A stretch of DNA of 64,000 nt from Adineta vaga (Eukaryota > Animalia > Rotifera): NCBI GenBank assembly GCA_021613535.1, contig CP075495.1, forward strand, positions 620,001-684,000, given 5' to 3'. The notes beneath the pieces are model-generated. The model saw nothing but the letters and a program-made list of their open reading frames with translations. It was not told the origin of the DNA and did not search any database. Position numbers and translations under genes: made by a program. Positions 20,601 through 53,770 of the stretch are shown here, in pieces. Every line of letters begins with the position of its first letter. Position 1 is the stretch's first letter.

Positions 20601-20702
20601 CAATTGAATTGTCCTTATGGTTTATCATTTGATTCTGAAGGAAATCTTTATGTTTCAGATTGTGTCAATAATCGAATCGTTCGATTTGATAAAATTCATT
20701 GA
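17621..20702 (+). CDS. Gene B: caspase-like peptidase C14 (catalytic Cys replaced by Trp) + Ser/Lys linker + NHL propeller, 588 aa (exons 17621-17911, 17969-18473, 18549-18620, 19804-20702)
   Basis: Motifs ALIIGIGDY, LFYFAGHG, LDCWR, GSLIAFACAPG and NGLFTKYLL. All junctions are GT-AG and frame-consistent (phases 0,1,1). Confidence 0.85.
19250..19284 (+). repeat. (AAAAG)7 microsatellite in the last intron of gene B
   Basis: Direct reading. Confidence 0.9.
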
Positions 20703-25074: not shown

Positions 25075-26163
25075 CTATGTTGAACTTAAAGCTGTATGAG
25101 CAAGTTGTGATGAATTTCCTGAACGATCAAAAAATGCTGTTGGATCTCTTGATGATGCTTCACGACTAAGTGAATTCCAAAAAGTTTCTCCATAATAAAA
25201 ATATTGTGATAAATTAAATAAAATTGACATTAAATATGGAAATAATCGAAGACTTAAATGAACAAATACTAAACGATTATAATGAAGTTTTTTAATTATT
25301 CGTTGATAAAAATTTAATTTTTCATTTTTAAGAGAAAATACACGACCAGTTGTAATTGTATAACATTTTAAGAAAATATTAATAACTGTAAATATATAAA
25401 TATAAATAAATACAATAAAACAATAAATAATTATCATAGGAAATGCATTTGTAAAGAAATAAGGAAGAATCATACCACCAACGAATAAAAATGTTATAAT
25501 TGATACAATTAAACTAAGAAAAAAGATGATTATTACAGTAATTCTTCTCCATTTTTGTTTTCGTTGAAATATTGAAATACCTTCTCTTCGTTTTTGAATA
25601 ATTAAAATTGTTTTTGAAATAAAATTAAAAGTAAAACTTATAAATGGACTAAGAAGATAATTATATATTCGATAACCAAATAGATTATAACAATTCCATA
25701 ATGTTGCATTATCACCTGACATACAATTCGATTGAATAACACAATACCAAATTGCATGAGCAAGTAATGGTAAACAAGAAAAGATAAGATCATATAAATC
25801 ATAGATTGGAATTGTTTTACCTTTAGTTTTTGTTTTTATTGAAACTTTTTTATAGTGTTCAACAAAAAATAAACTCGATATTGAAAAGGAATTTTGTGGT
25901 TTAGGTGGTGATTGAATTATTTGTCGATGACGACGTTGAGGTAAAGGTTCAGGTTCTTCATCTCTTTGAATTTCAATAAATTCCATTGGTAATAACCATG
26001 TATCATAAACAGCTTTATCCCAAAAACGTAGAGAAAAATCAAAAATTAAAAATTGTATTGGTAAAATAAAATATGGATGAATTCCTGTATGATAATCACG
26101 AAATGTATAAAGTAATGGATTACCATTTTGATAATCAGATGGAATTGAAGTTGTACTACTCAT
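25075..26163 (-). CDS. Uncharacterised multi-pass membrane protein (tandem paralog 2)
   Basis: 362-aa ORF collinear with 23751-24833, with conserved protein blocks and silent-site divergence. Confidence 0.8.
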   Translation of the reverse strand: MSSTTSIPSDYQNGNPLLYTFRDYHTGIHPYFILPIQFLIFDFSLRFWDKAVYDTWLLPMEFIEIQRDEEPEPLPQRRHRQIIQSPPKPQNSFSISSLFFVEHYKKVSIKTKTKGKTIPIYDLYDLIFSCLPLLAHAIWYCVIQSNCMSGDNATLWNCYNLFGYRIYNYLLSPFISFTFNFISKTILIIQKRREGISIFQRKQKWRRITVIIIFFLSLIVSIITFLFVGGMILPYFFTNAFPMIIIYCFIVFIYIYIFTVINIFLKCYTITTGRVFSLKNEKLNFYQRIIKKLHYNRLVFVHLSLRLFPYLMSILFNLSQYFYYGETFWNSLSREASSRDPTAFFDRSGNSSQLAHTALSST

Positions 26164-27072: not shown

Positions 27073-28146
27073 ATGTCAAATTTAACAAGTTATTTTACTT
27101 TAGTAAATCAATCATTAAATCGTTATGGTCCAATTCCACTTCTTTTATTTGGTACAATTGGAAGTCTTTTGAATTTATTAATTTTTACACGTAAAATTTT
27201 TCGAAATAATATTTGTGTAATTTATTTCTTAGCTTCAACTATTTCGGATATATTTATGATTGCATCTGGTCTTCTTTCTCGTGTTCTTAATGGATTTGGT
27301 TATGATCTTGCTCAAAATATTTCAATATTATGTAAATTAAGAATATTTACAACATATTATACGGGTTATGCAGCTGCTTGGTTTATTAGTTTTGCTTGTA
27401 TTGAACGTTATCTTAGTTCATCAACAAATGTACGAAAACGACAATTTGTAACAATGAAAAATACATTTATTTCAATTCTTTTTATTCTTTTATTTGGTTT
27501 TATTGCATTTGGTGAACAATTCTATTGTATGGATATAAATCAACATTTATTAGGTGGGCCACAATCATGTTATCAATTACAATTAAATATTTATTGTCAA
27601 ATTGCTGATAGTTTATTACAATTTTTCTTTCAAATACTTACACCAACAATAATGATGATTATTTTTGGTTTATTAATTGTACGAAATGTTCGTCGAAAAC
27701 ATATGCGAGTTGATATTGGACAACAAACAAATACAATTGCTTTGTCAATAGAAAAACATCGTCCTTTACATGAAGGAGAATATTTGAGAAGAAAATCAAC
27801 GATTACAATTGAATTTAATCGAACAACACAAAAACGTGATGCACAATTAATTACAATGTTACTTATTCAAGTAAATCAAATGATTTTCAATAGTTTTAAT
27901 TGTTGCTTTTTTTTTCTTTAGGTTATTTATTTTATAATCTCATCATTTCCAATTAGTGTTTATAAATTTTATGCCATTGCAACATTTCATGATCCGAGAT
28001 CGTCTCTTCAAAGATCTATTGAAAATACGATCTTTATTCTTTGTGTTTTAAGTTTATTTTCAAATAATTGTGTTAATTTTTATATTTATACTCTTTCTGG
28101 AGCAGTTTTTCGTAAAGAATTCATTAAATTATTTCGATTTAATTAA
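27073..28146 (+). CDS. Rhodopsin-like (class A) GPCR (exons 27073-27870, 27922-28146)
   Basis: GTIGSLLN (TM1), YFLAS..SD (TM2), CK.R...CIERY (TM3, DRY-like). Exon 2 supplies TM6-7 with NFYIYTLSGAVFRKE. Confidence 0.88.
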
Positions 28147-28456
28147 TCTTAATTATATTCATCAATGTTGTCATTGTAATTATAAACAATTCCTTTGATT
28201 CGAATAAAAGAAATTTCGATGGATTTTCTAACGTTGCTTTTATTCTTTCTGAGTAATTTATTTGTTGATTTGTTAAAAGATAAATAAATTCCATTTAATC
28301 CTTCGAGTTTGTTTGATTTTATATTACGAATTCTCTTTGCAATCGATGATTTTTCCAACAATGAAATATTTTTTGTTGACTTTGACTCATGTTTGTTTAA
28401 AATACTCAAATGCATCGACAGACATTTCATTCTTTTACCAACTTCAATTCAAACAA

Positions 28457-30710
28457 ATGGCAACGGCTAACAACACAAAACAATGTTTCAAATGTTTGAA
28501 ATATAAAAAAATTATAATTCAGTGTCAAGGTTGTTCAAAGGAATTTTGTCAACAAGATTTCAAAGGACATCAAGAATCATTAAATGAAGAATTACATCTT
28601 ATTATCAATGATTATGATCAATTTAGAGATACGATAAACGATCAAAAACAAAATCCACAAAATCATTCACTAATAAAACAAATTGATCAATGGGAAACAA
28701 ATTCCATTCAAATTATTCAACAAACAGCGGAAAAATGTCGACAAAATGTTATTGAACATTCCAAAACATCTCTTAGAAACATCGAACAAAAGTTAAGCGA
28801 ATTAGGTGAACAAATCAAAGAAATTCAACGAGAAAATGAATTTAATGAAATTGATTTGAATGAATTAAGAGGAAAATTAAATCAAATGACTGAAGAACTA
28901 AATAATCCATCAAATATTTCAATTCAAGAACATTGTCAAGGATTTATTAATGAAATATCAGTTATTTCAAGAAAGAGTAAGTTGAAAGTTTTCAATTCTT
29001 ATTTTATTGAAATGAAAAACTGATTTAAAACTGATGTCTAAAAAAGATCTTTATTTTCTAATGAAGAACAAAAAGACAAATCAAATTAATACAATTTAGT
29101 TTTATGTTCTTCATTCGAATGATTACGAGAAACTTTGATATTTCGTGTTCAAAGGGTAACAATAACTGAAAAATGTTGTCTTTAAATAGATTAATTTAGT
29201 CTTTTCTTCTTTATTTTATTTTATCATATTTACAATCATAAATATTTCATTTTGGATCTTTAGTTCAATTAAACATATGTAAAATAATGATGAATTGAGT
29301 AAGGAGAGAGAGAAAATAAATATGTCAATGTGCATTTATATATTACTAAATCTTTTATAGAACACTAAAATGAACAAAAAAAGATTCGAAAATTATCTAA
29401 AATCTGAGAAAAACGCAAAGATTTTATATTATTATTATTAATTCATTTTTTTATTCGAATCTTCAGAAAAAATAAAAACATTTTTATTGATTTTCAAATT
29501 TCGAATTATTTTTCGTTCATTAAATTATAATAATCAATTGAAAAGATGTTTTTCTTCGTTTTCATAATTTAATTTTCGATGAAATCAAAGATTTCCTCTT
29601 TACTTTTAATTCAAAATCAAACTGAATTTCTAAACGAAAATTAAATTAAAAAAAAAATTTTTGATTTTTATCTCAAACTTCATGAAATTCGAAATGATTT
29701 TATTCAAAGCAAATTTCTTTTTCTTTGTTTTCAATTTTTAGTTGATTGAAAAACGAAAAAATAAACTTTTCATTTTCTTTTTCACAAATCTTTTTTCTTT
29801 TCTTTGTTTAGAAACGAAATTTCAACAAAATGGAACAATTGTTGCGGGAGGAAATGGAGAAGGAAATCAATTAAATCAACTCTATTGTCCTGGAGGAATC
29901 TTTGTTGATGAAAACAAAAACATTTTCATTGCTGATTGTGACAATCATCGTATTGTTGAATGGAAATGTGATGAAAAACAAGGACAAATCATTGCAGGTG
30001 GAAATGGACAAGGAGAGAGAATAGATCAATTGAATTTGCCAACAGATGTGATTGTTGATCAACAAAATCATTCAATCATCATTGCTGATCAAGGGAACAG
30101 ACGAGTGATGCGATGGTCAAGAGATCAAAAACAACAAATTCTCATTCAAAATATTGAATGTTGGGGTTTAACAATGGATCAACATGGATTTATTTATGTT
30201 TCTGACCGACAGAAGAATGAAGTGAGAAAATGGAAGTTAGAAAAGATTAATGAAAACAAAGAAGGAATATTAGTTGCAGGTGGAAATGGAAAAGGAAATC
30301 AAAGAAATCAATTCAATTGTCCTACTCACATCTTTGTTGATAAAGATCAATCTCTTTATGTTTCAGATTGGGATAATCATCGTGTGATGAAATGGAGAAA
30401 AGATGCGAAGGAAGGAATTGTTGTGGCTGGAGGAAATGATGAAGGAAACAATCTCAATCAATTGAATTATCCTGAAGGATTGTTTGTTGATGAATGGAAT
30501 CAAATCTATGTGGCAGATTGTGATAATCATCGAATAATGCGATGGTGTGAAGGAGATGAAGAAGGGGAGATTGTTGTTGGTGGAAATGGTAAAGGAAGTG
30601 AATCAAATCAATTGGATTGTCCTTCTGGTTTATCATTTGATTTAGAAGGAAATCTTTATGTTTCAGATTGGAGAAATCATCGAATTGTTCGATTTGATAA
30701 AATTCATTGA
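28457..30710 (+). CDS. Gene C: B-box-like zinc finger + coiled coil + NHL propeller (RING-less TRIM-NHL-like), 472 aa (exons 28457-28976, 29812-30710)
   Basis: CFKC-x10-CQGC-x4-C-x2-D-x3-H is followed by a heptad-rich Q/E/K region. The phase-1 donor A|GTAAGT is in frame with the NHL acceptor. Confidence 0.87.
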
Positions 30711-31992
30711 AATGAACTTTGCATTTGAAACGAAAAGATTTGATAAAAAACGATTTTTGTTGATTTGATTTTGATTTTAAAAAAGAAAAAAGATTTTTTT
30801 CGAAATAAAATTGAGAAAATCTTTTTGTTTTTTTTTGTAAAAACTTAATGAATAAGGAGCGAAATTGTCGATTTGTTTCGATGAAATTCTTTTGTTAATC
30901 TGAAGTGAAATTTGGTAGAAGAAATGTTTCGGTTTGATAAAAATGTTTGTCAAATCAAATCTTGAAAAGTTCTCAAAATTTCTCATTGAACAAATGAAAA
31001 TCAATGAAAAGATTTTCTCGAGGTTTTTCTCATCGAAATTTTATTTCTTTCAAAGTGATTTTAATGAGAAATGAAATGAAATTGATTTTCGAAGATTTTG
31101 AAAAAGAAAAACAAAACGATCGAGGAAGAAAAATAATTTTAATATGAAAACGAAGATAATTTGTAAATTGATTTGTAAAATGATCAATTCTTTAAAAGAA
31201 AATTTCGAATATTTATAAAATAAATCAACAATCGATTTTGAAATGAAAAGTTCAATTATTTTAACAAGGAAAAACATAATTAAGAAGAAATGTTTTCGAA
31301 CTAAAAGATGTATTAATTAGTGACGAAAACATTGATCTCACTTGAAGATTCTCTAGCATTCTCTATGAAAATCAAAGACATTAATCGAATTCTATGATGA
31401 GATATTCAATGAAGTTTTTCAGTTCAATTAAGTTCAAAATGATTTAAATTTTCATCAGAAATTGTTTTGATTAATTCTCGAACACGTTGAATGTTTGCAG
31501 TTCGATAAATCTGTTTTTCAGTTAAAATATTGGATGCATTTATTTAGAATTATTAATATTATTCTCTTTTTTCAATTTTCGATGAAAAAGAAATATTTCA
31601 AATAACTTTTGATAAAAATATTCGTGATAATGAAAGGATAATAACATTATTTAAATAAAAATATGTTGTGTTCTTTATTAATTTCTTTTATTCATTTTAA
31701 TTTCACTGAAAATCAATTTAACTTATAACGATTTTTTACAAAATAATTTCGACATGATTAATAATTACATCGCAAATTTTTCTTTTATCTCTTATGAAAA
31801 TTCATTTCAAAATCGTAGATAAAAAATTATTACTCGTTAAATTCAACCTTAGAAGTATTTGTATATTCATAAATAGAAATAATTAATATCATCTTGTTTT
31901 ATTCCAAAATATAAATCAGATCTTAATCTATTCTTTTCAATTGATTCGATTATATTCTTAATCTAATGTTGTTATAATGTTTGAATGATATA

Positions 31993-32892
31993 CAGATTGA
32001 TTACAATTATTTTGAATAGTTTTCCTTAGTGTTTATTCTTTTTAAATGGAACATCAGTTGCTCTATCGAAATTGACTATTTCGATTTTATTTATCATTGT
32101 TTCTAGTCTAAAAATTTTAGTAGTTATAGAAAGACACTAAAAATACCATGTTTGCACTTTTGGTGAATTCATACAGTGTGTTTTGTTCTTATTTTATATC
32201 TTCGAATAGATTTTGTTAATAAACAAAATAAACCAAAAAATCTCTTTAGATTACACAAGAATATAGTTTAATGTCTTTTTTGATTTCAAACAGAAAAAAC
32301 CTGTAATTTTATTTCAATAAAAAATTCTTTTTCTCAAGTATAAGATATATCTCTACATAATTTTTAATTTTTATCGTCTGATACATTTTTAGAAAAAAGC
32401 TAAATACCCCATGTGATCTTAAATGAAAAGCTCTACAAACTACGCTATGAAGCATATTGTGATCGATTTAAAAAAGTTCAAGAAATGATGTGAGATTATA
32501 ATACGTGTACATTGAATATTTCATTAATGGAATTTTAATTGATTTTAAAAACAAAATGCGCAAATGTAAGATCATTAAATTTATATAAGTCAAAGAGTTT
32601 TTCACGGCGCATCTTCTGGTACATTTTGATTTTCCTACGACATATTGAATAAGATAATAAAATTTAAAAAGATACGTAAATTTTATATTATTTTAACTAA
32701 AAATGCAAACATTGTGTTTTTAGTGTGTTTCTGTAACTACTAATTTTTTTAGACTAGAAATAAAGATAATAAAATGGAAATAATCAATTTCAATAGAGTA
32801 ACTGATGTTCTATACAACTATATGAGAATAAGAAAAAAAGGTGATGTTTCAGTTAAGAAGAATAAACTATTAAAAATAATATAATCAACTTG
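31993..32892. mobile_element. Non-autonomous DNA transposon/MITE, Tc1-mariner-like, ~900 bp
   Basis: Long imperfect inverted arms (32049-32156 vs 32704-32810). Outer termini are TA|CAGATTGATT ... AATCAACTTG|TA, consistent with a TA target duplication. No transposase ORF. Confidence 0.7.
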
Positions 32893-35800
32893 TACATAAC
32901 AATCGAGTTGTTTCATCATTAATATTATTTCAACTGAAATACATAGAGTCGTTCGTATCTATATCAAATCCTATGCACATAGTGAAAATTCGTAATATTA
33001 TTCTTAAAGTATTATATTCTTTTGAAGATTAATTGTTGTAATATTCTAGATAAAATCAAATCAATTTGATAAGATAATGAATAGTTTAAAACAATTCTTC
33101 TTTCTTTATCATCAATTGCATTGTTTTTATAGATTTATTATAATTATTCTCTACAGAAGATTTCAAAAATATAAAAAATCCAGATAAATTTCCTTTATTT
33201 TTTAGTACTGTGTTTATTAATTGTTTTCCAACTACTCCATTAATTCTCTTATCTTCCAGATTTAATTCATTTAATGATTAAATTATACTAATCAAATATT
33301 GTATTTCTTGATTATACAATAGATTAAAATTCAAATCAATAAAAAAAAAGAAACATTGTTTATTTATTGTGATTTGATAGAGAACTTTTGTTAAACATTT
33401 TTCTACTTCCGAAAAAGATATAATTTCTTTCTAAAATTTTTGTAGATTGATGTTCATAACAATATCTTTGTATTGATTTATCTAATCTATAATCTTTTCT
33501 TATCTTATTAATTGTTAATTCATATTACACAAAAAAGTTGATTATTCTATTTGTGATTCGAATACTTTTTAGATCTAATTTAATGATTATCTGTTTTTAA
33601 TAGAATAGAAAATTAATCTTTGAAATATTATTTTATACAATGTATCAATGAATAATTGTATCTAATATGAATAAAAGAAATCTTTATCGAATTATGTAGA
33701 AACATATGAAAATCAATATTTTCTTTATTAAAAAAGAATAATTTTACTTCATATTTTCTTGTATCATTGATTCAATTTCCTTTTATCAATGTTTAAATTA
33801 TATAAAATATAATACAAATGAATTTCTTTTTAATTTATTAAAGATCAAATTTTAACAAATATTTGAAATGATTTTTATAATTATATAGAAAATATGAATA
33901 GAATTTGATATTTACGTTATGTATCAATAACTTTTGATTGATTATAGAAAGATCATTCGAATGTATTTTCTTTTAAAAGATTTCGATTATTTCTTTTCAT
34001 TGTCAAAATGATTCATATCGAAATGAAATTATACAAATGATTTTCAATATGATTTTGAATTTTATTTAATAAAAAATCGAGTATTATCAATATCTTCTGA
34101 AAATAAATGAAATTAATAAGAAGAAATACTTCATTGTATTAGATTTAATAATACATCAAATAATAATTGTGTATCTTCATCACAAAGATCAAGAAATCAA
34201 ATAATTAAATATGTCTATAGATAAAAGTTTTTTCATAAAGTTTATCTGAAACGAATGAATTTACTCGATTATATTTCAATGCAAAAATAATATGTTTTAT
34301 ACTTATGTATCATTATAAAGTATTGTGATCGAAATTGAAATTTATTAAATATCTATGAACAAACATTGAATTAATTAATAATATAATAAATAAATTCTAT
34401 GAAGATTCAATGTTAATTTTATCGATATGTTTTATAAATTTATCTCAATTATTTTAATTTCACAAGGAAATTTAAATAAAGATAATTTTCATGTTTTCAT
34501 AATAGTTCTAAACACATTTCATATTCTTCAAACAGAGTCTTCGATTGTATCAAAATATGTTCAAATAAAAACATTCAACACTGTCTAATTATTCACTTCG
34601 TATGAACCATTAAAAGTAATAATAAAAAGATCCTATTTATCGAATGACCAATTTTGATCAGACAGATCACTGTGATAAGAAAGAAGACAACGATAGAGTT
34701 GAACATGATTTGATAATGGGAGAAATCTGATGGATCTTTGCAAAGATCTGAGAAAATTGATTATTTTGTCGATTTGATCTTTTTTCTTGATGTATTGATT
34801 ATATCGATAAATTCTAAAAGAAATCATTCATCTTGATGATAATCGAATTTTAGAAAGAAGATATTCAATTACAAACGATAGAAGAATATATTTAGAAATA
34901 AAATTGTCAATGATCTTACGAGATCAACTATCGAATATCATTCAAATACATATTTTGACATATCAATGCCATGTGTAGATGAAGTCGAATCCATCTTATT
35001 ACAGATTTATGTGAAGAAAAGATTCTTCACTTTGATAAAAACTTCTGGAAATGTTCTCAATTTTACTGAATTGTACCTAGAATTAAAATATACATTGGTA
35101 TATATTTTCTCATCGGTATCTTATTGATATAAGATTATACACAAGTTTATTTCTTAATTCAATTTAATGAAATACTTTGAATATCATAAACTCGTCATAT
35201 CCATTGTTTTTTTTTCAACATTTAATTCTCAAAAAAATTGACAAAAATAATATTAGTTTACAGAGAACAAGTCTGGGAAAGGGTAAGTTTTTGTAATGAT
35301 TTTCTATATTAGTATCGATCTTTGTAATAGGAACATGTTTCTTTTCGTAAATTCTCGAAAGAAAAAAAAATAAACAAAAGAAAATATTTATATTGATAAT
35401 GATAAGAATTAAGAACATATCATAATCTCTTTTTATACGATTCATCTTCTACGTTCTATTTTTTTCATCGATACTTTATAGAGTTGTTGCACAAGTCCAC
35501 GATGTTATGATTTGCATAATAAGTAAAAAGAAAAACATAACGAAAAATATCTCATGTTATTTTATCAAAGAATAAAACTAGACGGATATATTATTAATTT
35601 ATGCGAATAGCACAAAAATGAATTTTGAGATAAATACATAGAGTATGATTGACCATGTTCTGTTCTTACAGAATCCGTTCGATTTATAAATCAATATCTT
35701 TGCAGATTGTCAAATTTTTCGAGATTTCTATTTTCTATAGACGAGTGAAATTTGAAGGATTTTTAGAGCATAAAATTGATTAATAGATGACACGATGTAA

Positions 35801-37869
35801 CTTAAGAAATTCTGTGAATGTTTGTGTTGTTAGCATAAACTAGTAATACTTCACAATATATGATTGTTAATTACAAAGGAGAGTAACGAAACATTTACTG
35901 AATGGATTCGAACAACCTATTACTCGATTAGTAACCGATTGCGTTTACTACTTAAACCACAAGAACACATCATATATGAATATATCATTTAATTTGTTCT
36001 ATTTTCAAAATGATAAGGATTAAAGTTACAGATCTTTTCAGCTAATTCGTAATTATAAACATCCTTTTTAGAAGAGGTTGTTCATTATTACAAATGTCTA
36101 CGAATATCTAAGATACCAATACTTTAGTTCGATAGTTTTGTTTCAATAATGAAAACACAAAACAAATCGAGAAGAAAAACTATTTATTTCCTTTTCTTTC
36201 TAAGTATAAAATCAATTCTTCTTCTCAAATAAATAATTTTACCCTATTCGTTAAAATCTCGATAGTTCAGTATGAAAACATTAATGAAATTCCCTTGTAA
36301 TCGAATATGGAAAATGGTACAAACAAGAACTATAATAGTCAATTGTTTATCTAATTTACATCAAACAAGTAGATTTGTTCGAATAATTTATGTTCGGACA
36401 TCTCCATCAGACATTATTTCATAGATCATTACAAAAACATTAATCAATATAAGAAAATATTCATAAATATGATATTGCATGTGAAGTAAAGAGAATAGAA
36501 ATGATTATTGGGATATATTGAGTTAATCAAATATTTGATCATTGTTATCATCGTGAAACGTGAAGAAGTAACTAAATATTGAACAATAATTGACTGGAAA
36601 TACCATCGAAATAATAATAAAGAAGGAAAGAAAGAAAAGAACTATTGACGTAATTCAAATATTCCGATTCTCCGATCGAGATTATTCATGATGATAAAAA
36701 TCATTGAATTAAATCGAATTCACAAGAATATCCATCATCTATTTATTACTAAAGAAAATAATTAATTAAAAATAAACAACGTTGTCGGTATTTCTTTCAA
36801 ATGAGTTTTATATTGAATGTATCAGAACTATTGTCGATACATTTTAGTAACATTTAATATAAAATTATTTCATGTACATAAAATAAGAATATACATGAAG
36901 AAAATAGAAAAGAATAATGTTTCCATTCGTTTTCAATCAAATTGACTTGATTTATCGTAGAATAATAAATAAATATCGAATATATTTCTCACTAATTATT
37001 ATTCTCATCCAAATTTAAATGTTATCAAATGTTTATATGATCAACGAGACTAATATTGTCATTTCATATTCTATAATCATCAAATCTTTATCAATTTCAA
37101 TTAAATTTTCACAATCATTGATACACAATTCATAGTTAATGTTTGTAGATTATCATAGAAAAATTCTATTATCTAATAAATCACAATTCAAATAATATTT
37201 TCCAAATGTAACTTCTTAAATGTCTTCATACTGAAGAAAACATTGCTTTTCGAGAGAAAATAAGTATTTTCTTTATTTTATCGTACTTCATGAATTTGAA
37301 TTTCATTTCTTTTAACATATTCAAATAAGTTAATGTCTAAATGGAATGAAATAAAGATGAGATGTATAATCATCTATCAATTTGTATAAATTTTAGTTTA
37401 TTAACTAAATAATTCTACGGTTACACAAATTCGATATGTTGTTCAAAAGTTCTACTTTCATCTCTTGGACAACATTAATGACATGTTCTTTGATTTCAGC
37501 ATTATTTCCATAAATTTCAACATATAAATTCATCAATATCTCTTTTGAAATATTGAAAAAAAGAAGGTTTTATAAATTGTAAAAGTAAGTTTATATTTCT
37601 GTTGATTTTTAATTCAAAAACGATACTTTTGTATTCGTTCACATTCGATGTGACTGATATTTCAGAAATCAAATATCATTTTATATTGACACAAGAAATG
37701 ATTTTAATGAAAATACATTCAATATTTTCTTCTGAATTTCATTGTTCGTTTTATGACGAAATTATCCAAAAGGAAAGATGGATTTTAAGGTAAAAGATCA
37801 GAAATTGGTATCTTGACCACTCAAAGATTAATTAATTATTAATTCGAACTATTTTATAGTTATAATATT

Positions 37870-40800
37870 AAAATTTAATTCTTGGGAAAACTTTTCTCGA
37901 TATCTTTAGTTTGATTTTGTTATTTTTCAAATTCAACATATTACAGAACAATCATTCTATTCCGAGATTTTGAACATCGTTAAATCAGTTTCAACTGATT
38001 CTCTTAATTTCCCAGTGGGATTCGATTGTGTTCAAACTGATTGATCTCTTATATCAATACAATAAGTAATGGGGATGAGGAAAGAGAATGTGATTCCATG
38101 GAGGAATTCTGAAACTAATTCCACACTGTTCAACATCACAGAATAGAAAATATTCTCTTTATATCGATTCTTTTCATGAAAATAGATAAAACTTTCTTTG
38201 TTAAAACAATGAAAAATACCTTCACTTCTTTTTCAGTTTCAAATTTCTCCAAAACTTCATAATCATTTTTTTAAACGATTCACAGGTTGTTTCATTTCGT
38301 TGATCGATTATTGAAATATCATCTTGAATATGTTCGACCATTTCATTATTGACAATAAAATCGAATTCATCAAAATTCAAGTATCTTTTCTATCCGATTT
38401 CAATCTTTTTTCTTCGTTTTCATTCTTAAAGTTCGTTGAATTTCAACGAAATTACATCGAATTTTTCAAAATCATCGAAAATCAATTTTATTTTATTTCT
38501 CATTGAAAACACTGTGAAATCACTTTGACAGAAACAAAATTATCGAAAACACAAAAAATAAAAGAAAATCTTTGTTATATCGAACATTTTCATCAAATCA
38601 AAACATTTCTTTCGCCTAATTCAAATTAAATTTAACAAAAATCTTTTCGTTTGAAATGCAAAGTTCATTTCAATGAATTTTATCAAATCGAACAATTCGA
38701 TGATTTAGATAATCTGAAACGTAAAGATTTCCTTCTAAATCAAATGATAAACCATAAGGACAACTCAACTGATTTGATTCACTTCCTTCACCATTTCCAC
38801 CAACAACAATCTCCCCTTCTTCATCTCCTTCACACCATCGCATTATTCGATGATTCCACAAATCTGCCACATAGATTTGATTCCATTCATCAACAAACAA
38901 TCCTTGAGGATGATTCAATTGATTGAGATTGTTTCCTTGACCATTTCCTCCAGCCACAACAATTCCTTCCTTCGCATCTTTTCTCCATTTCATCACACGA
39001 TGATTCGAATAATCTGAAACATAAAGAGATTGATCTTTATCAACAAAGATGAACGAAGGCCAGTTGAGTTGATTTCTTTGATTTCCTTTTCCATTTCCAC
39101 CTGCAACTAATATTCCTTCTTTGTTTTCATTAATCTTTTCTAACTTCCATTTTCTCACTTCATCCTTCTTATAATCAGAAACATAAATAAATCCATGTTG
39201 ATCCATTGTTAAACCCCAACATTCAATATTTTGAATGAGAATTTGTTGTTTTTGATCTCTTGACCATCGCATCACTCGGCTGTTCAATAGATCAGCAATG
39301 ATGATTGAATGATTTTGTTGATCAACAATCACATCTGATGGATAATTCAATTGATCTATTCTCTCTCCTTCTCCATTTCCACCTGCAATGATTTGTCCTT
39401 GTTTTTCATCACATTTCCATTCAACAATACGATCATTCACATAATCAGCGATGAAAATGGTTTTGTTTTCATCAACAAAGATTCCAAAAGGATGATAGAG
39501 TTGATTTAATTGATTTCCTTCTCCATTTCCTCCCGCAACAATTGTTCCATTTTGTTGAAATTTCGTTTCTAAACAAAGAAAAGAAAAAAGATTTATGGAA
39601 AAAGAAAATGAAAAGTTTGTTTTTGTTAAAAAAGATAAATTTCTTTGTCGAATTAAATTTTTTGTTTTAAAATTGATTTTCATTTGATTTATTTGAAAAA
39701 AGAAAAGGAAATTTTCAACGAAATTGTTTTATTAAATAATCGAAGATAAAATAAAGAATTTGTAATTTTTGTTGAAATGATCATTTTTTCTTTTAGTTGT
39801 TTTTCTCATTTAATAAAGAAATTTATTTTCGAAAATATTTTGAAATGAAGATAAAGAAAAGATTTAATTAATCGATAATTTTTCATTTTAAATTGAAGAA
39901 AAAAAGAAGATTTTCTATTGAATTTTTAAATCGAATAAAACATTTTCCACTTCAATTTCTAATTAAAAAATAAAATAAATATTTACCACGTTTTGATTTT
40001 GTTGATGTTTTATTATTAGTTGAAATAGATGAATGTTGTTTAGATGAAACTGAAGAATCTAGAAAGAGGAAAAATTTCAATTTAAAATCTCTTTGATATG
40101 ACTACGATTAGAGTTCGAAAGAAAAAAAGGTCTCCATTTTATGAAGATACTCATTACCGAGTAGTTTTCATGTTTTTTTCTCTTAAATAATAACATTGTA
40201 TACGAGTCAAAACGATGTTTTCCTAAAATAATTCTGAATAATAATATTTAACATTATGCTTTTTTATTAAAATAAATATTTTTTAATTTTTATCAAATTA
40301 AGAATATTGTGTAATTGAAAAAAGTGTCGTTTTCTTTTTTATTTCAGATTAGATTATGATTTAACTCTTAATCGTCTAAAATATTCTTTTTATTGTTTAT
40401 AAATAATAAAAACAACAATGTTAAATATTTTATATTTAATTTATAAATCTCTTTTATAAATTCAATTTTTTTTCTCCTAAAAGATAATTTAACGTACGTT
40501 GATATAATTAGATCTTAGTGTTTACATTGATAGATGTACAAACATCGTTAACAAAATGTAGAGAACATCACAGACAAAGTTCTCGAAACTATTCGATATT
40601 AATAAAGCTTTTTTTAACAGAAAAAGAAATTTTATTGTTTAGAAATGAATGCAAATATCAAATCGTTCTTTTCTTCAACTCTCATATTTCGATCTTGTGG
40701 ATGTATTTAGAACTGAACTTCATCGTCAGGCACGTAAACATTCACGTCCTTAACTTGAGAAAGAAATTGCGAAGAGAAAAAAGATTTCTGTTTCGGACAG

Positions 40801-40990
40801 TCGAGGGTCAAGTGAGTCGAACAACGAACGTTACTTGTCCCTTTTATTCTCATTTTTTAGCGTCAAACATATTTTGTTGAAAAATGATTCTCGAAAGTCA
40901 AACATTGTATTTAATTTGATGTCTCAGCAAGGAGGGAAGTGCGAAGCCAGCACGTATCGGATTTTTCAGGTGTTAAGGTGCTCACACTTC
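37870..40990. repeat. Segmental duplication shared with ~49515-52810 (3' flank, NHL exon, intron, linker exon, most of next intron)
   Basis: Near-identical core ~38115-40610 vs ~49805-52310 apart from the NHL variable codons, with more diverged shoulders on both sides. Confidence 0.9.
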
Positions 40991-41816
40991 CTCTTTGTGT
41001 GCGCGTATGAATAAAATCTAATAAATTAAACTTACTCATTGATTGAATTGATGATGTAGTTTTCTTTTCATTTGAAATTGTTAATTTCTCAATAATTGGT
41101 AAATTATCATCAAAAGGCGAAGCAAGTGTTACATAAGGAGGAGTTTGTTCTTTCAAATGAATAATAAATAAACGTTTTGATGCTTTCCATTTACTAACAA
41201 TTTTAAAAAACGTTCCAGGAAGAAGAAGAATTTCATTTTCATCTTGAAAATAAGAATGAGATTGAATAAATTTTCCATGTAAACATTCAATATTAAAAAT
41301 TGTTCGTTGTTTATCTGTTTGAAGAAATGTTTTGATAACATTCATTGTTTCTGTACATGAACTCATTCCCCACCAAATTTGATCTTCATTTTCATAATGA
41401 TCATTTAAATTTTCTGAAACACCTCGATAAATAATTCCTTTAAATGATGGAAGTTTAAATAAAGCTGTAAAGAATAATTTAAGATAAAGAAACCACGAAA
41501 CTAATTGATTTCGATTTTTTGATCGAAGTTTTTCATTAAGTAATTGAAATAAACTTGGATATGGATGAGGCCATTGCATTGTATAAAGATGAATTGCAGC
41601 TGATTCATCTTGTGTTAAACCATCTTTTGGTTTTCGACAATTCTTTTTTGCAATTTCAATCATTGTATCACAGTCATAAAGTAATGATTTTATTGGTTCA
41701 ATTGCTTCTTTTAATGAAACTAATGGGTATTTTTCATAACCTTTAATTGGTGATAATGCCTGATCTGATTCTTTATCAGCATCTAGAAAGCGTTGTGGAA
41801 TTATTCTTTCAGCCAT
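38670..41816 (-). CDS. Gene D: ARTC-type ADP-ribosyltransferase + 72-nt linker exon + NHL propeller, 583 aa (exons 41816-41036, 40058-39987, 39568-38670)
   Basis: Motifs IYRG, WGMSSCT and QDENEILL. All junctions are phase-1 GT-AG, and the linker exon is nearly identical to that of caspase gene F. Confidence 0.85.
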
Positions 41817-44438
41817 TAAATCAAATTTTATTCAAATCAAAGTTTGTCTTACGAAAAATATGAAGAAATGATTTCGATTTAAATATGATATAAATGAATG
41901 AAAGGAAGAAAGAGAATGAAATGTTTTTCGATGATTTTTTTGTTTATGTAAATAGAATTGTTTGAGAAGATTTTTCTTCATTTTGATTCAACAACGAAAG
42001 TAGAAGTATGAAAAATAAAGAAAACTTTCAAATTGTATTTTTCTTTCTACTTCCTATAGACATTTAAGTTTCTCTCTATTCGATTCAAAAGAAAATTAAC
42101 GAAAACAAAACTATCGTGATTTCTTTGATAATATTTTATTAAAAATTGTCTAAGATGATTTTTCATCACCAGTTCTTTCGAAGTCAACGATTTTATTTCG
42201 TCGTATAATTTTGAAATAAATTTCTTTTCGAACTGATTCTTTCCTCGGTAAAAATTCTTTTCTTCAAGTATAGATGAAGATTCATCACTTGTCGTCAAGT
42301 TTTCTGTTTCTATCGATTGTCGAACGGTTCATTGAAAAAGTTCAATTAAATTTATAGAATAAGATAAAACTCAAACAACTAATGAAAAATACGAAATCAA
42401 CGATTTATACAAATAAAAAAGAAAGAAAAAACGTGAATTTGTATTGATTTTTTGTTGAAGAAATAAATTAAGAAATTCAGTTGAATCTAAAATCATAATT
42501 AATAATTGAATTTGTATCATAAAATTTCATAGAATTTTAATTAAGTATATAAAACATCTTTAAACATATTATTATGTAATAATACAGATTTATCATGTAA
42601 GATTAAATTAAAGAAATATTTAATCAACTATCAATGAATAAACATAAATAAACATGAACACAATGAACTTCACGTTGTTTTCTATAAAGCGTGTGCGAGA
42701 GATGAACGTGCTTCTTATCCTTCACTAAAAGTTACATCTTTTCCATCGCTCATTCTCAAATCATTCGCAGTAAATATTTGTAAATCTGCAAATAATTGAC
42801 AAAATAGAATATTTTCATAAATTGTTCTAGAAAAGTTCTAAGCAATTTGATTTGTATCTTTAGCTAAACACATTTTATCAAGAATCGCTGCTAAACGTGA
42901 AGACTTACATGAACCTGTCGCACGGGTAATTCCAATTAAATCATAGATAATTGAATTGAACTTCAAGTTAACGAAACTTTCTTCATATTAAAACTTCGTA
43001 TAGAATTTCATTTTGTTAATATAAATTCATTGATTCTTTTCGATACAATTCGACTTTCACTTCATTTTTTAATCACATAAGTCAAATTAATCTTAATTGA
43101 ATATCTCAAATAATCAAGAAATAATAAAAGATATTCGCTGTGAGTAAAACTTTATTCATCAACCAACTTTCAACAAATAAAATATCCATATTAATCGCAC
43201 AAATTCGATTCACTTTAAGATTTACTTAATCATTTTCATATGTTTATCTGATTATTTAATTGTATAAAAGAACAAGAAAAAGTCATCAAAATCAAATAAT
43301 GTTGAAGAACAATGATTTCTTCAAACAGTGTTATCCATATTTGATATAAACTATAACATTTAATTCTTCAGATTTCTCCACATTATTCGAAATAAAATTA
43401 ATAATTTGATCTGTTATTGTTTTGATCAATAAATTTGTTCATAATCTTCTGTAAATTATCGAAGAAAGTACAAATTCGTGTTTGTAAACCGAATATACGT
43501 ATCAATATCTTAGATTATTTAAAGAATTTCTTTTAAAAATAATGATTGAATAACTTTTGCATCGAGATGATGAATTAGTCTTTCCAATTTGTTTCAAGAA
43601 GATTTATTAAACGATGATATTCATCTTTTGTTGAAAATTCGAATAAATTATTGTTTATGATCGATTGTTAAAATTAAATTAATCCATGTTGAGAATTTAA
43701 TTTATATTCAATGATACCAAACAGATTCAGTTCAATCTAAGACATTTCTTTTGTTGTTCTTGTTGTTGTTTTCTTCGTCATGTTTGAACAATAAAAATCA
43801 ATCAAAGATCGACGAATTTATTTTAGAATAATTGAATAAAATTTACCTTTGTTTGTTCTTTTACTTGGAGAATCAAAGAGTTTTATAGAATTTATCATAA
43901 TCGAGATTAAATTTTGTACATTTTTTTTCATTCTTTTGGATGATCATGAAAGAAGAAGGTCATTATTTACGACAATTAGTTTTTCTTATTTATTTCAAAT
44001 GTCAGATGAGATAATGCCTTAACTTATTCAGATTTTTAAACAATTTCATTCGATTTTCTGATTACAAATCGAAAATTGATGTCTTTTCTTCAGAATGTAA
44101 AGTTTTTTTCTAAATGATTCGATGGTTTTTCTCAATCATAAAATAAAAGCTTTTTCATTCAAAGGTTTCCAATCAATTTATATTCTTTTGTTTCTTTCAT
44201 TGATTTTCAAGAAGGAAAATACGATTTAGGTGTTGTTAGCAATTTGACACTTTTTCAAAGCTTAGAACAACTTGTCCTCGTGTTCAAGTGTCCACATTTT
44301 TCGCATGATGATTTGATTAGCGAAGAAAGAAAAGAAATCATTTCATTCTATAAAAAAAAGAAGCGAATTCTTATTGAATCTTTTTACAAAAAACAAATAT
44401 ATTTTCTCAATCATTTTTCTACCTAAATTTTGTTTATC

Positions 44439-46713
44439 TTAAAATAAAAACTTTTCTTTTTCTTTTTCGAAATCAAATCGAACGATTCGATCATTTCCAC
44501 TATCTGAAACATAAAGATTTCCTTCTAAATCAAATGATAAACCTTGAGGACAATCCAATTGATTTGATTCACTTTCTTCACCATTTCCACCAACAACAAT
44601 CTCCCCTTCTTCATCTCCTTCACACCATCGCATTATTCGATGATTCCTCCAATCTGCCACATAGATTTGATTCCATTCATCAACAAACAATCCATGAGGA
44701 CAATTCAATTGATTAAGATTGTTTCCTTGACCATTTCCTCCAGCCACAACAATTCCTTCCTTCGCATCTTTTCTCCATTTCATCACACGATGATTCGAAT
44801 AATCTGAAACATAAAGAGATTGATCTTTATCAACAAAGATGAAAGTAGGATAGTCGAGTTGATTTCTTTGATTTCTATTTCCATTTCCACCTGCAACTAA
44901 TATTCCTTCTTTGTTTTCATTAATCTTTTCTAACTTCCATTTTCTCACTTCATTCTTCTCACAATCAGAAACATAAATAAATCCATGTTGATCCATTGTT
45001 AAACGAGAACAATCAATATTTTGAATGAGAATTTGTTGTTTTTGATCTCTTGACCATCGCATCACTCGTCTGTTCCCACGATCAGCAATGATGATTGAAT
45101 GATTTTGTTGATCAACAATCACATCTGTTGGGCCATTCAATTGATCTATTCTCTCTCCTTCTCCATTTCCACCTGCAATGATTTGTCCTTGTTTTTCATC
45201 ACATTTCCATTCAACAATACGATCATTCCCCCAATCAGCAATGAAAATGTTTTTGTTTTCATCAACAAAGATTCCTTCAGGACGATAGAGTTGATTTAAT
45301 TGATTTCCTTTTCCATTTCCTCCCGCAACAATTGTTCCATTTTGTTGAAATTTCGTTTCTAAACAAAGAAAAGAAAAAAGATTTGTGAAAAACAAAATGA
45401 AAAGTTTATTTTTTCGTTTTTCAATCAACTAAAAATTGAAAACGAAGAAAAAGAAATTTGCTTTGAATAAAATCATTTCGAATTTCATGAAGTTTGAGAT
45501 AAAAATCAAAAATTTTCTTTTTAATTTAATTTTCTTTTAGAAATTCAGTTTGATTTTGAATTAAAAGTAAAGAGGAAATCTTTGATTTCATCGAAAATTA
45601 AATTATGAAAAAGAAGAAAAATATCTTTTCAATTGATTATTATAATTTAATGAACGAAAAATAATTCGAAATTTGAAAATCAATAAAAATGTTTTTATTT
45701 TTTCTGAAGATTCGAATAAAAAAATGAATTAATAATAATAATATAAAATCTTTGCGTTTTTCTCAGATTTTAGATAATTTTCGAAACTTTTTTTGTTCAT
45801 TTTAGTGTTCTATAAAAGATTTAGTAATATATAAATGCACATTGACATATTTATTTTCTCTCTCTCCTTACTCAATTCTTCATTATTTTACATATGTTTA
45901 ATTGAACTAAAGATCCAAAATGAAATATTTATGATTGTAAATATGATAAAATAAAATAAAGAAGAAAAGACTAAATTAATCTATTTAAAGACAACATTTT
46001 TCAGTTATTGTTACCCTTTGAACACGAAATATCAAAGTTTCTCGTAATCATTCGAATGAAGAACATAAAACTAAATTGTATTAATTTGATTTGTCTTTTT
46101 GTTCTTCATTAGAAAATAAAGATCTTTTTTAGACATCAGTTTTAAATCAGTTTTTCATTTCAATAAAATAAGAATTGAAAACTTTCAACTTACTCTTTCT
46201 TGAAATAACTGATATTTCATTAATAAATCCTTGACAATGTTCTTGAATTGAAATATTTGATGGATTATTTAGTTCTTCATTCATTTGATTTAATTTTCTT
46301 TTTAAATCCTTCAAATCAATTTCATTAAATTCATTTTCTCGTTGAATTTCTTTGATTTGTTCACCTAATTCGCTTAACTTTTGTTCGATGTCTTTAAAAG
46401 ATGTTTTGGAATGTTCAATAACATTTTGTCGACATTTTCCCGCTGTTTGTTGAATAATTTGAATGGAATTTGTTTCCCATTGATCAATTTGTTTTATTAG
46501 TGAATGATTTTGTGGATTTTGTTTTTGATCGTTTATCGTATCTCTAAATTGATCATAATCATTGATAATAAGATGTAATTCTTCATTTAATGATTCTTGA
46601 TGTCCTTTGAAATCTTGTTGACAAAATTCCTTTGAACAACCTTGACACTGAATTATAATTTTTTTATATTTCAAACATTTGAAACATTGTTTTGTACTAT
46701 TTGCCATAGCCAT
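44439..46713 (-). CDS. Gene E: B-box-like + coiled coil + NHL propeller with alternative C-terminal tail, 479 aa (exons 46713-46194, 45358-44439)
   Basis: Inverted paralog of gene C with the same 835-nt intron. The NHL exon ends RFDFEKEKEKFLF instead of RFDKIH. Confidence 0.87.
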
Positions 46714-49700
46714 TTGTAAGAAAGAGACGTTGTAAAAGTGAAAATGAAAAGATTGATGTTGATGAAGATAAGAATAAAATGTCTCAAAGACAATAATGAT
46801 AAGATATAAAATATGTTGGAAAATAAAGATGGTTGAGTCATATTTTAATATTATTTGATTCTCTTTCTTTTTATCATGAAAACATATTATCTAGTATTGA
46901 AAAATCATATGAAAGAAAAGAATGTATATTCGATCTAGTAGAGTTATTCGATCATTTTATACATATAGATATAGCGATGAGGGACAAACTCTTTAAAAAT
47001 TTCTTTGAATTATAAATATTCAATTACGACGAGGTTTGTGCACAAGTGAAAATTAAATTTTACAATCTTGACCATTTTTACAGAAATAAAAGAAATGTTT
47101 TGTAATTATTGTTTCGAATAATTCGAGTCACATAGTCGAATTAACATTCTCAAGTTTTTGAGTCCAAGTCGAGATTGAGAGTGTATCTTTTATGCCTTAA
47201 TCTTTCCATTCATTGATCGATTTCAATACTCTTCGAAATATTTCAATATGATTTTATCTGAATAAAAATCTTTTTTTTGAACTCTGTTGTATTGAAATCT
47301 TAACATTTGATTGATGAATTTTGTTTCTTTTTTTTAATATTTATTATCATTTTGATTCAAATTTCTAAAATTGAAAATTAATTTATATATCTTTTTCAAG
47401 ATTTTTTAAATTTGTTCAAAAAAAAGAAACATAACATTAGAATATCGATAAATAAATCTCTTAAATTGATTGAAAACAATTAAATATATTAAAAAAGAAA
47501 AAACAAATCTGTTCAATAATTATAATATTTTCTTCTATTAGATAACTTACCGTTCATCATATTCAATCACAAATTGACATAGTTTATTAATGAATCATAA
47601 TTGTATATAACGATATATTGATGATTATCTAATTCTTTACTATAGTCAATTTTCTTTGTAGAATTCTAAAGTATATTACGATATTCTTCAAAAATGAATC
47701 ATTATAATTATTATCGTTTATAAATGGATAAACAGCAAAATAAGAGAAGATATTGATAACATCTTCTCGACATTTGTTTGACAATGAAAACATCAACTAA
47801 TATAACAGTTGTTTTTTTTTAATCATCTCACGAAATATATATAATCAAATGTTTTATTAAATCATAGAATGAGTGTAATGTTTCGAAATAAATGAAGAGC
47901 AGATTCTAACTGACAAACAATTGTTGAAATTTAGTAAATTATAATAATCGAATTATTAAATATCAGTTTTTATGATAATTATGAAGAAAAGTTTAGTATC
48001 AACTTAATAAAATAATTAATATTAATTATATTTATATAAACAAAATCTTTCTCTCGATAAAATAATCGATATTTCAATTTTTATCAATGAATAATTTAAC
48101 TAAACTACTATCTGTTGTGATAAAACTCCTCGCATTGCTTCATCATAAGTATAAAAGATAAAACTTTAGGAAATCTTGTTAAAAATTGTTCATTTCGATA
48201 AATTACTATTGTTATTAATTAACATTGATATGAATTCAAACTATTTTAAAAATAATATTGTTCAAATACTTGAAATAATAGTATTGGAAGAAAAAAAGAA
48301 CACATTGACAATAAGATTCTTGAAAAATGAATTATTGATTCGAATAATCGTATAACATATTCTATTGATCTAAAACTAATCAAAGTTAATTAATTTATTA
48401 ATATTATAACTAATGTAATTGAAATATTATCTAACATTTGAATTTTATTTATTTTCAATGAAAATAAATTTCATTTCTTTTTGTTCATATCGATATCTTT
48501 TAAAATTTAATCTAAATAATAATTATACAATTATTCTTTCATTCAATTATATAAATCATAAAGAATATTAGAAAAAAAAACATTATTTTTCAAAATATTT
48601 ATCACAATTTGATTAAAACTCAATGAAAATATCGATATTGTTAAAACTATTAATAGTTTTTCATATTAAAATATAATTATTTGTTGTAAATTCATTGACA
48701 ATATTTTTAACACTTTGAAATTTAGTTCAATATTTTATTGATTTAGTAAGAAAATGAAATAAGAATGATTTGATTTGAATATATTGATTCAGATTTAATT
48801 ATCAAATGAATATGATAGAATATGTTTAACTATTCTGGATTTTTCTTTCGATTAATCATTTGAAATAAAGTTGATTTGAGATTTTATTTGAATAAAATAT
48901 TTTGATTTTAATTATTAAATAGATAAAATACTTTTCTAATAGAACTTCACAAATGAAATCAAGTTTAGTTTTTAATTTCTTTTTAAATATAAAGTAAATG
49001 ATCTATTTATTAAAGAAAATCTATAATTCTTCTCATTTTATTTGTACATACTATTTCAAATGATTTCAATAACAATTTAATTGATTATAATCTTATAAAA
49101 TATCATGTGTGTAATATCTCTTTGATTTATTGATCAATATTTATATAATTCATTGAATGTTCATTTACGACGATTATAGATTAGATTTCTTTCTATCATT
49201 CAGAAGTATTTGTTGAGTCTGTTCAATATGTATTATAAACATTATCGGTTGATTCGACGATCAGAAAATCAAATATTCATTATTATTATCTCGATATCAT
49301 ATCATTTTATCTAAATCGTCTTGATACAATTCGATTTTTCGGAAAGAAGTTGTCAAACTTATTTCATTGTTGTTGGTATCGATATTAAAATATTTTCCAT
49401 GAAGAATTATTTTCCAAAATGAATTTCAATGATGAACACATCGATCATCAGTAGAATATTTTTGACTGAAATCATATGTAAGTACAATACAAGTTTTACA
49501 TTTACAGTTCATCTTTAATTCTTGAGAAATTTCTCTCGATATCTTTAGTTTGATTTTGTTACTTTTCAAATTCAACATATTACAGAACAATCATTCGATT
49601 CCGAGATGTTGAATATTGTGAAATCAGTTTCAACTAATTATCTCAATGTTTTAAAGAGATTGGTTTGTATTCAAATCGATTGATCTGTCTACACAAAACA

Positions 49701-50361
49701 ATAAGTGATGAGGGTGAAGAAAGATAATGTGATTCCATTAAGGAATTTAGGGAGATAGAATGAAACTATATACCAATATTAAGTGTATTTGGTAATTGGT
49801 TGGAACTAATTCCACACTGTTCAACATCACAGAATAGAAAATATTCTCTTTATATCGATTCTTTTCATGAAAATAGATAAAACTTTCATTGTTATAACAA
49901 TAAAAAACATCTTCACTTCTTTTTTCCGTTTCAAATTTCTCCAAAACTTCATAATCATTTTCTTAAACGATTCACAGGTTGTTTCATTTCGTTGATCGAT
50001 TATTAAAATATTATCTTGAATATGTTCGACCATTTCATTATTGACAATAAAATCGAATTCATCAAAATTCAAGTATCTTTTCTATCCGATTTCAATCTTT
50101 TTTCTTCGTTTTCATTCTTAAAGTTCGTTGAATTTCAACGAAATTACATCGAATTTTTCAAAATCATCGAAAATCAATTTTATTTTATTTCTCATTGAAA
50201 ACACTGTGAAATCACTTTGACAGAAACAAAATTATCGAAAACACAAAAAATAAAAGAAAATCTTTGTTATATCGAACATTTTCATCAAATCAAAACATTT
50301 CTTTCGCCTAATTCAAATTAAATTTAACAAAAATCTTTTCGTTTGAAATGCAAAGTTCATT

Positions 50362-53300: not shown

Positions 53301-53770
53301 GATTTTGATCATCAATTTTATTAAGAAAATGTTGTGCATTGATTGCGTAATTTCTAAGTTCAGAACCAGTTAATCCTTTTTTTCCATCGTATTCTTCTTT
53401 AAAATCATCCGATGGAATTAAATAATTTTGATCCTAAAAATAAAGAATAAGAAAATAAAAAATTGTTCAATATTAATCTTACTTCCCATTGTGTACCATG
53501 TCCTGCAAAATAAAATAAAACCATATCATCTTTTCTTAATGAACGTATAAAACTATTAACTGTCGATTCAAATTCATCACAAGTTAAATTTAATTTTGCT
53601 TCACCACCATGAATAATAAATCCCATTGATTTTAACATTTTCGACATATCATTTGCATCGTTAACAGCGTTTGCTAAAGAATTATTAATTTCATATTTAC
53701 TAATACCAATAACAAGTGCTATTTTACGATGAATATTAACTGAAGAAGAAAGATTTTCTATGGAAGCCAT
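50362..53770 (-). CDS. Gene F: caspase-like peptidase C14 (intact His/Cys dyad) + linker + NHL propeller, 587 aa (exons 53770-53483, 53433-52929, 51751-51680, 51260-50362)
   Basis: LFYFAGHG and LDCCR are intact. Intron positions and phases match gene B. Confidence 0.87.
52820..52891. repeat. Degenerate telomere-like hairpin element in the intron of gene F
   Basis: G/T-rich arm (ggatgtgggt...gtgagtg), core gaagaagatata, then C/A-rich arm (cacacccactcacatccccaccct). Confidence 0.6.

Follow-up and report, generated by a model that had tools for sequence, protein, structure and literature searches.

A shared NHL-propeller exon with a hypervariable face is more divergent than its neighbouring introns in gene pairs of the rotifer Adineta vaga

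Can a coding exon diverge several-fold more than the intron to which it is joined? This question is raised by a 64,000-nt stretch of the bdelloid rotifer Adineta vaga (assembly GCA_021613535.1, contig CP075495.1, positions 620,001–684,000, forward strand; hereafter the window, numbered from 1), in which six copies of a ~906-nt exon, each a single open reading frame (ORF), encode NHL propellers. Copies A (10313–11218), B (19794–20699) and C (29802–30707) lie on the plus strand, and copies D (38673–39578), E (44472–45368) and F (50365–51270) on the minus strand. The window is 73% A+T; the haploid assembly from which it is taken, 100.8 Mb in six contigs, is the sole one compared here. An earlier note on this DNA, made by eye, had claimed that in the paralogs C and E the NHL exon has diverged several-fold more than the adjacent intron, and had named exact alignment as the analysis that might overturn the claim. 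We carried out this alignment, and divergence in intron and exon is indeed unequal.

The gene models on which the comparison depends are simple. Gene C (plus strand) consists of a first exon of 173 codons (28457–28976; ORF, GT donor and RNA contigs), which encodes a Cys/His zinc-finger-like motif and a putative coiled coil and ends at a phase-1 donor, an 835-nt intron (28977–29811; GT..AG borders, zero RNA depth) and an NHL exon (29812–30710) specifying a six-bladed propeller according to Pfam, an AF2 model and Foldseek. Contigs from two RNA-type runs cover both exons, but neither the intron nor the upstream DNA, and those ending at 28976 run on into the first 11 letters of exon 2, marking a splice from 28976 to 29812. 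The intron of gene C is real, and the gene is expressed and spliced. Gene E (minus strand) has the same layout, with a first exon (46194–46713) that is 97% identical to that of C (93.6% amino acid identity by tblastn), an intron (45359–46193) that aligns to its counterpart without gaps and with identical splice sites, and an NHL exon (44439–45358) in which homology to C stops at 44472. The final residues of E differ: after an Asp common to the copies, a Glu/Lys-rich tail of ~11 residues (44439–44472) replaces the KIH ending found elsewhere.

The ungapped C/E alignment spans 2267 nt (28432–30698 against 46738–44472) and contains 86 differences, with GT..AG splice sites at the given borders in both genes (in C, donor after 28976 and acceptor before 29812). 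The introns differ at 8 of 835 positions (0.96%), close to the ten or so counted by eye, and the NHL exons (29812–30698 in C) at 54 of 887 (6.1%), a 6.4-fold contrast (Fisher p = 2.6e-9). Nei–Gojobori counting assigns 45.6 of the exon differences to the non-synonymous and 8.4 to the synonymous class, bearing out the earlier estimate of roughly 50 mostly non-synonymous changes, and the multiply changed codons pointed out at the time are all present (TTG/GGC at codon 79, TGG GAT/TAT TCG at codons 190–191, TCT/CAA at codon 275). The first exons differ at 15 of 520 positions. These differences are clustered and mostly non-synonymous (codons 3–6, 106–108 and 135–139 in the coiled-coil part), and the zinc-finger-like motif is identical between the two genes.

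Two further pairs show the same contrast. Between D and F, for which it had likewise been proposed, the NHL exons (38670–39568 and 50362–51260, both minus strand) differ at 47 of 896 positions, compared with 13 of 1403 in the intron and 3′ flank (p = 4e-10). These 13 are divided between the intron upstream of the D exon (39569–40579, minus strand; 11 differences, ~99% identity to its F counterpart at 51261–52271) and the 3′ flank (38281–38672; 2 differences). D/F is more telling than C/E, as near-identical DNA lies on both sides of the exon. The third pair, L001 and L002, are twin genes coupling an ADP-ribosyltransferase (ART) to an NHL propeller at C2:704-714 kb, 20–30 kb outside the window (L001 at G000:C2:712992-715897, L002 at 704339-707244). 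Their similarity is limited to the gene body, with unrelated DNA further upstream. A single nucleotide in 1213 differs across the whole head exon plus intron, against 45 of 897 in the NHL exon. The contrast between exon and non-coding DNA is thus confirmed and highly significant.

Where within the exon does the excess lie? In a codon alignment of the ten closest copies (A–F, L001, L002, L003 and L004), and with an entropy of ≥1.5 bits defining a hypervariable codon, 24 codons are hypervariable, 20 are moderately variable and the other 255 are almost invariant. The two variable classes hold 46 of the 54 C/E exon differences, and C and E carry different codons at 22 of the 24 hypervariable positions. 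The remaining framework carries 8 differences in 765 nt (1.05%), matching the intron. The excess divergence is shown to sit in ~44 codons instead of being spread over the exon, so that the earlier statement of coding sites outrunning non-coding DNA holds for these codons but not for the exon as a whole. Nucleotide diversity falls from 0.46 at hypervariable codons through 0.24 at moderately variable ones to 0.018 in the framework, and non-synonymous divergence at hypervariable codons reaches 0.35–0.53 against a synonymous divergence of 0.02–0.04 in the framework. Synonymous diversity hitch-hiking near hypervariable codons appeared as a non-significant trend only (Spearman p = 0.14).

To avoid circularity, we also took the variable codons exclusively from 118 homologues of other species. 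This definition returned 36 codons, including 23 of the 24 hypervariable codons defined above. They hold 40 of the 54 C/E differences, amounting to 37% divergence compared with 1.8% elsewhere (p = 1e-28), and D/F, L001/L002, A/C and A/L001 gave similar figures. In other bdelloid species it is these same codons that vary.

The variable codons can be placed on the protein fold. The NHL exon of C matches Pfam PF01436 with E = 4.5e-33 (112 bits, cut-off 20), and an AlphaFold (AF2) model built from 23 family members (pLDDT 92.3, pTM 0.91) contains 24 strands in six four-stranded blades. The closest solved folds retrieved by Foldseek are the NHL domains of Thin, TRIM71, TRIM2/3 and LIN-41 together with the Pizza6 designs (E ~1e-19 to Thin, TRIM71, TRIM2 and the Pizza6 designs). 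When the blades are aligned on their (A/S)D anchor, variable codons fall at equivalent places in all six: the position directly after GNG, those flanking a conserved Pro, the two that follow (A/S)D and, at times, the one behind the next Asn. Each blade thereby has four to five hypervariable codons (GNG-x, x-P-x, (A/S)D-x-x-N-x). All of these map to, or border on, the loop preceding strand a or the one that links strands b and c, and none falls in an a–b or c–d loop. By NHL convention the top surface is the one made up of the d–a and b–c loops, and Brat uses it to bind RNA and partners (PMC4015489). On the model, the hypervariable codons are therefore predicted to form one face, the top, ligand-binding one, an assignment derived from alternating-loop topology rather than measured distances. 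Tyr, Cys, Trp, Glu, Ser, Asp, Arg, His and Gly abound among the variable residues. In the NHL exons of the window, Cys is as frequent as Tyr at the hypervariable positions (28 of 240 each) and the second position of hypervariable codons is a purine in 83% of cases, a composition that is unusual for a binding surface.

The ~900-nt NHL exon seems to serve as a shared cassette behind interchangeable heads, namely zinc-finger/coiled-coil, caspase-like and ADP-ribosyltransferase. ART ORFs (PF01129) precede A and D: the head of gene A (9161–9902, plus strand; E = 2.3e-9) ends at a putative phase-1 donor at 9902, and the one upstream of D (40911–41816, minus strand) is 65% identical to it at the DNA level. 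Caspase-like exons (Peptidase_C14, PF00656) precede B (17621–18499, plus strand; E = 6e-18 and 7e-14) and F (52915–53770, minus strand), the two heads sharing 75% of their nucleotides. The first exon of C and E has no homologue at genes A, B, D or F. All NHL exons, among them those of A (10323–11221) and B (19804–20702) on the plus strand, begin behind the acceptor sequence seen in C, and the donor behind the A head is phase-matched to it. The same phase-1 junction, observed for C, probably joins head to propeller in A, B, D and F as well. Across these genes the NHL exons are ~94% identical and their frameworks differ by just 3–16 per 765 nt (98.4–99.6% identity at genes with unrelated or old heads). 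Homology between genes of different type starts 20–56 nt 5′ of the exon and stops ~30 nt past the stop codon; the introns, rich in A+T, show no relationship across gene types. D, with its ART head, and F, with its caspase head, carry a common linker–intron–NHL–flank unit (37888–40858 and 49527–52552) with ~99% identity outside the exon, which means that this one cassette has had its head exchanged. The linker part of this unit (40580–40876) is 90–95% identical and thus more diverged than the intron.

As to the head of C and E, the first exon matched no Pfam family significantly. No RING match appeared even at E ≤ 10, and the exon starts nine residues before its single Cys/His motif. A weak ANCHR-like B-box match was obtained in E (E = 1.8), and B-box clusters at a feature score of 0.83, which we treat as a lead only. 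A general profile search gave many weak matches to coiled-coil families over residues 40–160. Pfam placed no NACHT or NB-ARC NTPase in any head, and C and E are two-exon genes composed of head and NHL. The family as a whole is very large, with hundreds of members in A. vaga and thousands across bdelloids: a genome search gave 945 first-look candidates, 130 of which were scored to yield at least 132 significant matches, and >6000 database proteins match at E ≤ 1e-20, nearly all of them bdelloid (Adineta, Rotaria) among the matches listed. Relatives occur in A. steineri, A. ricciae and Rotaria. Most matched proteins measure ~470 amino acids, like C, and one has a DED head.

What process could leave the scaffold uniform and the face diverse? 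Several observations indicate that NHL exons exchange sequence. In no copy does the nearest relative stay the same across the blades; E is closest in turn to C, B, L002, A, F and L002. The blades also contribute unequally to the differences in L006/L009 (p = 2.6e-12), A/F (5.5e-6) and D/F (1.9e-3). L006 (C1:13.60 Mb) and L009 (C3:3.64 Mb) differ at 5 positions in blades 1–3 and at 57 in blades 4–6, a configuration that reads as a clear half-exon exchange between chromosomes. F, whose flanks are sister to those of D, has framework variants at nt 40 and 103 in common with L002 and at nt 451 with both L001 and L002, and its three-nucleotide change at 765–767 is also present in more distant copies. 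Of the 66 pairs formed by 12 informative framework sites, 26 show all four gametes and so fail the four-gamete test (Rm ≥ 4), for which recurrent mutation is an unlikely cause at 1.8% diversity. A PHI test over all informative sites (19 of 1000 permutations) points the same way. In the L001/L002 pair, the framework is itself more diverged than the upstream DNA (10/765 against 1/1213, p = 5e-4), which implies that exon and upstream DNA have different histories. Taken together, these mosaic relationships and the contrast between head and exon show exchange among NHL exons.

The earlier note had offered three routes to the pattern: gene conversion that imports variant patches, a mutational process aimed at these sites, and diversifying selection of a very strong kind. 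The first is supported by the blade mosaics, the framework variants common to F and L002 and the four-gamete failures, and the last by variable codons that occupy the same positions in each blade, map to top-face loops throughout and recur in other species. We consider it probable, though well short of certain, that these two act together, with ectopic gene conversion homogenising the scaffold and pair-specific DNA and diversifying selection keeping the binding face variable; a targeted process found no backing, as set out below. Conversion would be frequent wherever homology exists. It would keep the scaffold, common to many copies, nearly uniform and hold DNA present in two copies near-identical (intron and exon 1 in C/E, intron and flank in D/F, head and intron in L001/L002), and it would also carry variable patches between genes. 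Selection for new binding specificities would oppose homogenisation at the face codons and fix new point changes there. The data also fit a reading absent from the earlier note, in which it is not the exon that runs ahead but the intron and head that lag, because the sole two copies possessing them homogenise each other by conversion. As for function, the domain architecture makes it likely that recognition is coupled to an effector head, possibly in innate immunity, and the overall pattern is in keeping with a family of recognition receptors, possibly immune, that diversifies and is shuffled by gene conversion.

A number of points weigh against this explanation. Recency and homogenisation are indistinguishable from one haploid assembly. 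The PHI result was only modestly significant. Adjacent hypervariable codons, 1–3 codons apart, are near linkage equilibrium (joint identity 1.25 times the null, z = 1.2), and such weak linkage of neighbours means that simple block transfer fails for most of the pattern. Among the 26 sampled copies, a fifth to a quarter of the differing patches have no match for either state, and private states make up 11% of those at hypervariable codons. The assembly alone links patches along a copy, since the public runs are stored as short contigs, broken at each variable patch. The suggested immune role, finally, is drawn from domain architecture. A search for donors of the C/E patches among the 26 closest copies located about half of the states elsewhere, the rest being unique, a share that is an upper bound. 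Unlinked, private and donor-less states mean that point mutation at face codons must contribute, and the L001/L002 contrast implies either that turnover is very fast or that the head was homogenised very recently, up to the exon border and no further.

Might point mutation suffice? Under this alternative, which we regard as unlikely, the pairs arose by recent duplication and then changed only by in-place substitutions, which very strong positive selection drove at the face codons, conversion playing no part. The equal divergence of framework and intron in C/E (~1%) speaks for such a history, single-step changes link all states at 10 of the 24 hypervariable codons, and the almost independent assortment of adjacent hypervariable codons and the 11% of private states are in line with it. 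However, it calls for a 40- to 400-fold rate excess at the face (~50% against 1% in C/E; ~28% against 0.08% in L001/L002), and it leaves unexplained the blade mosaics, the common framework variants, the four-gamete failures and the near-identical framework of genes whose introns are unrelated and whose heads are old.

A dedicated mutational process, be it templated micro-conversion or targeted hypermutation in germline or soma, could instead rewrite loop codons while sparing the scaffold. It would account for the extreme L001/L002 contrast (1/1213 against 45/897) and for face codons that are nearly randomised and nearly unlinked on an invariant scaffold. Transitions and transversions number 36:65 at hypervariable codons compared with 34:22 in the framework, again a difference that might speak for a distinct process. 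Yet the single-step changes at hypervariable codons include all six substitution types, and all three codon positions vary, so that neither an adenine-only signature, as left by diversity-generating retroelements (DGRs), nor the C-to-T-only signature of a deaminase is apparent. The larger ORFs scanned in the window contained no reverse transcriptase match, and an untranslated template copy was not noticed there in a non-exhaustive search. Furthermore, 89% of hypervariable codon states recur in other copies and framework variants travel with the patches. Given a spectrum that is not base-specific and no reverse transcriptase match in the ORFs scanned, we reject DGR-like and deaminase-like mutagenesis for the present and hold a dedicated process in general to be quite improbable.

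An artefact of assembly or polishing, in which short reads mis-assigned among paralogs produce false differences or mosaics, is conceivable where a framework common to many copies denies short reads a unique placement and public contigs break at every variable patch. We judge it very improbable, since copy C is covered at ≥97% likeness by contigs from DNA runs of two studies and from RNA-type runs of another, which give other letters at three exon positions only; mis-polishing between C and E would erase differences rather than create them, and the same positions vary in independently assembled species. Least probable of all is an unusual purifying constraint on introns and flanks (for example by a regulatory element or RNA) with the exon showing the true age, for although three independent pairs have very conserved non-coding DNA, conservation in the exon framework and at synonymous sites is about equal to that in the introns, and the conserved stretches are of different kinds (intron, 3′ flank, head exon), the AT-rich introns being unrelated between gene types.

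The surroundings of the six genes contain further ORFs. A third ART-like ORF between genes A and B (13008–13535, plus strand; PF01129, E = 5.7e-7) has no adjoining NHL exon that we could find. A tandem pair of ORFs of ~360 amino acids each (23751–24833 and 25075–26163, minus strand) shows 86–88% DNA identity and no Pfam match. Directly upstream of gene C, an ORF at 27073–27921 (plus strand) matches a rhodopsin-type seven-transmembrane family just below the Pfam cut-off (29.6 against 30.5 bits). The linker exon of F and several neighbouring ORFs likewise returned no Pfam family. Weaker NHL-like matches (25–43% amino acid identity) at both ends of the window (6–602, minus strand; 63272–63424, plus strand) indicate that the NHL gene cluster extends past it.

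How does this family compare with known diversified receptors? The closest described mechanism is that of the fungal het-d/het-e WD40 family, in which repeats undergo concerted evolution within and between genes and four positions per repeat on the interaction face are positively selected (PMC1805685; also PMC4986451). The rotifer genes resemble such fungal HNWD/NLR proteins (with highly conserved WD40, ANK or TPR repeats) in having a beta-propeller sensor whose interaction face is hypervariable at a few positions in each repeat, in concerted evolution with exchange among members, in diversifying selection and in variable effector heads. They differ in lacking a NACHT/NB-ARC NTPase, in using NHL instead of WD40 and in their animal host. 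Moreover, neighbouring rotifer blades are only ~60–62% identical in nucleotides within one protein; because they are not near-identical, exchange takes place between whole exons or blades of different genes, not by repeat shuffling inside a gene.

TRIM restriction factors and fish finTRIMs, with their variable B30.2/SPRY loops, and TRIM-NHL proteins such as Brat and LIN-41/TRIM71 (PMC4015489, PMC5908797) place a C-terminal recognition domain behind a zinc-finger/coiled-coil head, an arrangement predicted for C and E as well. Thin, TRIM71 and TRIM2 provide the closest NHL folds, and the top face is the known NHL ligand face. We rejected a canonical TRIM-NHL identity for the rotifer genes, which have no RING match and a non-significant B-box match. 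Canonical TRIM-NHL proteins are also few, conserved RNA regulators, whereas the rotifer family comprises hundreds to thousands of members with a hypervariable face and caspase or ART heads.

In major histocompatibility complex (MHC) class I and II genes, old diversity at the peptide-binding site is maintained in the exon while introns are homogenised by recombination. The parallels are an exon more divergent than the adjacent intron, patchwork motifs, and conversion combined with balancing or diversifying selection. MHC diversity, however, concerns alleles of one locus in a sexual population, and the rotifer case paralogs in one asexual animal genome. Diversity-generating retroelements of bacteria (PMC10907252, PMC7159879) share an invariant scaffold with randomised ligand-binding codons and a putative role in conflict systems; the rotifer exons differ by having no adenine-specific pattern and no fixed third codon position, and by the reverse transcriptase and template repeat that we did not see in the scans described above. 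In bdelloids, expansions of NHL and other repeat proteins with conjectured defence roles (PMC3846280, NHL in passing) and of caspase domains (PMC11258130) are on record. Our literature searches on bdelloid NHL hypervariability found no description of a hypervariable face or of the contrast between intron and exon.

Bdelloids are the textbook example of ancient asexuality, which raises the question of how they can match pathogens that coevolve with them. The rotifer family would be an animal counterpart of the diversified receptor repertoires of fungi and plants, built on a domain not known for such a role and without an NTPase switch, with death-type heads (caspase, ADP-ribosyltransferase, DED) swapped onto a uniform scaffold whose face is nearly randomised. 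A bolder possibility, which we consider improbable, is that very short templated conversion from hundreds of paralogs, or a targeted mutator, rewrites loop codons hundreds of times faster than background and perhaps in somatic tissue too; if true, this would amount to an anticipatory-style receptor repertoire in an anciently asexual animal, substituting for sexual recombination in the arms race with pathogens. The near-identical gene pairs offer a natural clock, as the non-coding DNA beside the exon measures elapsed time, and the rate and mode of diversification therefore become directly measurable in clonal lines.

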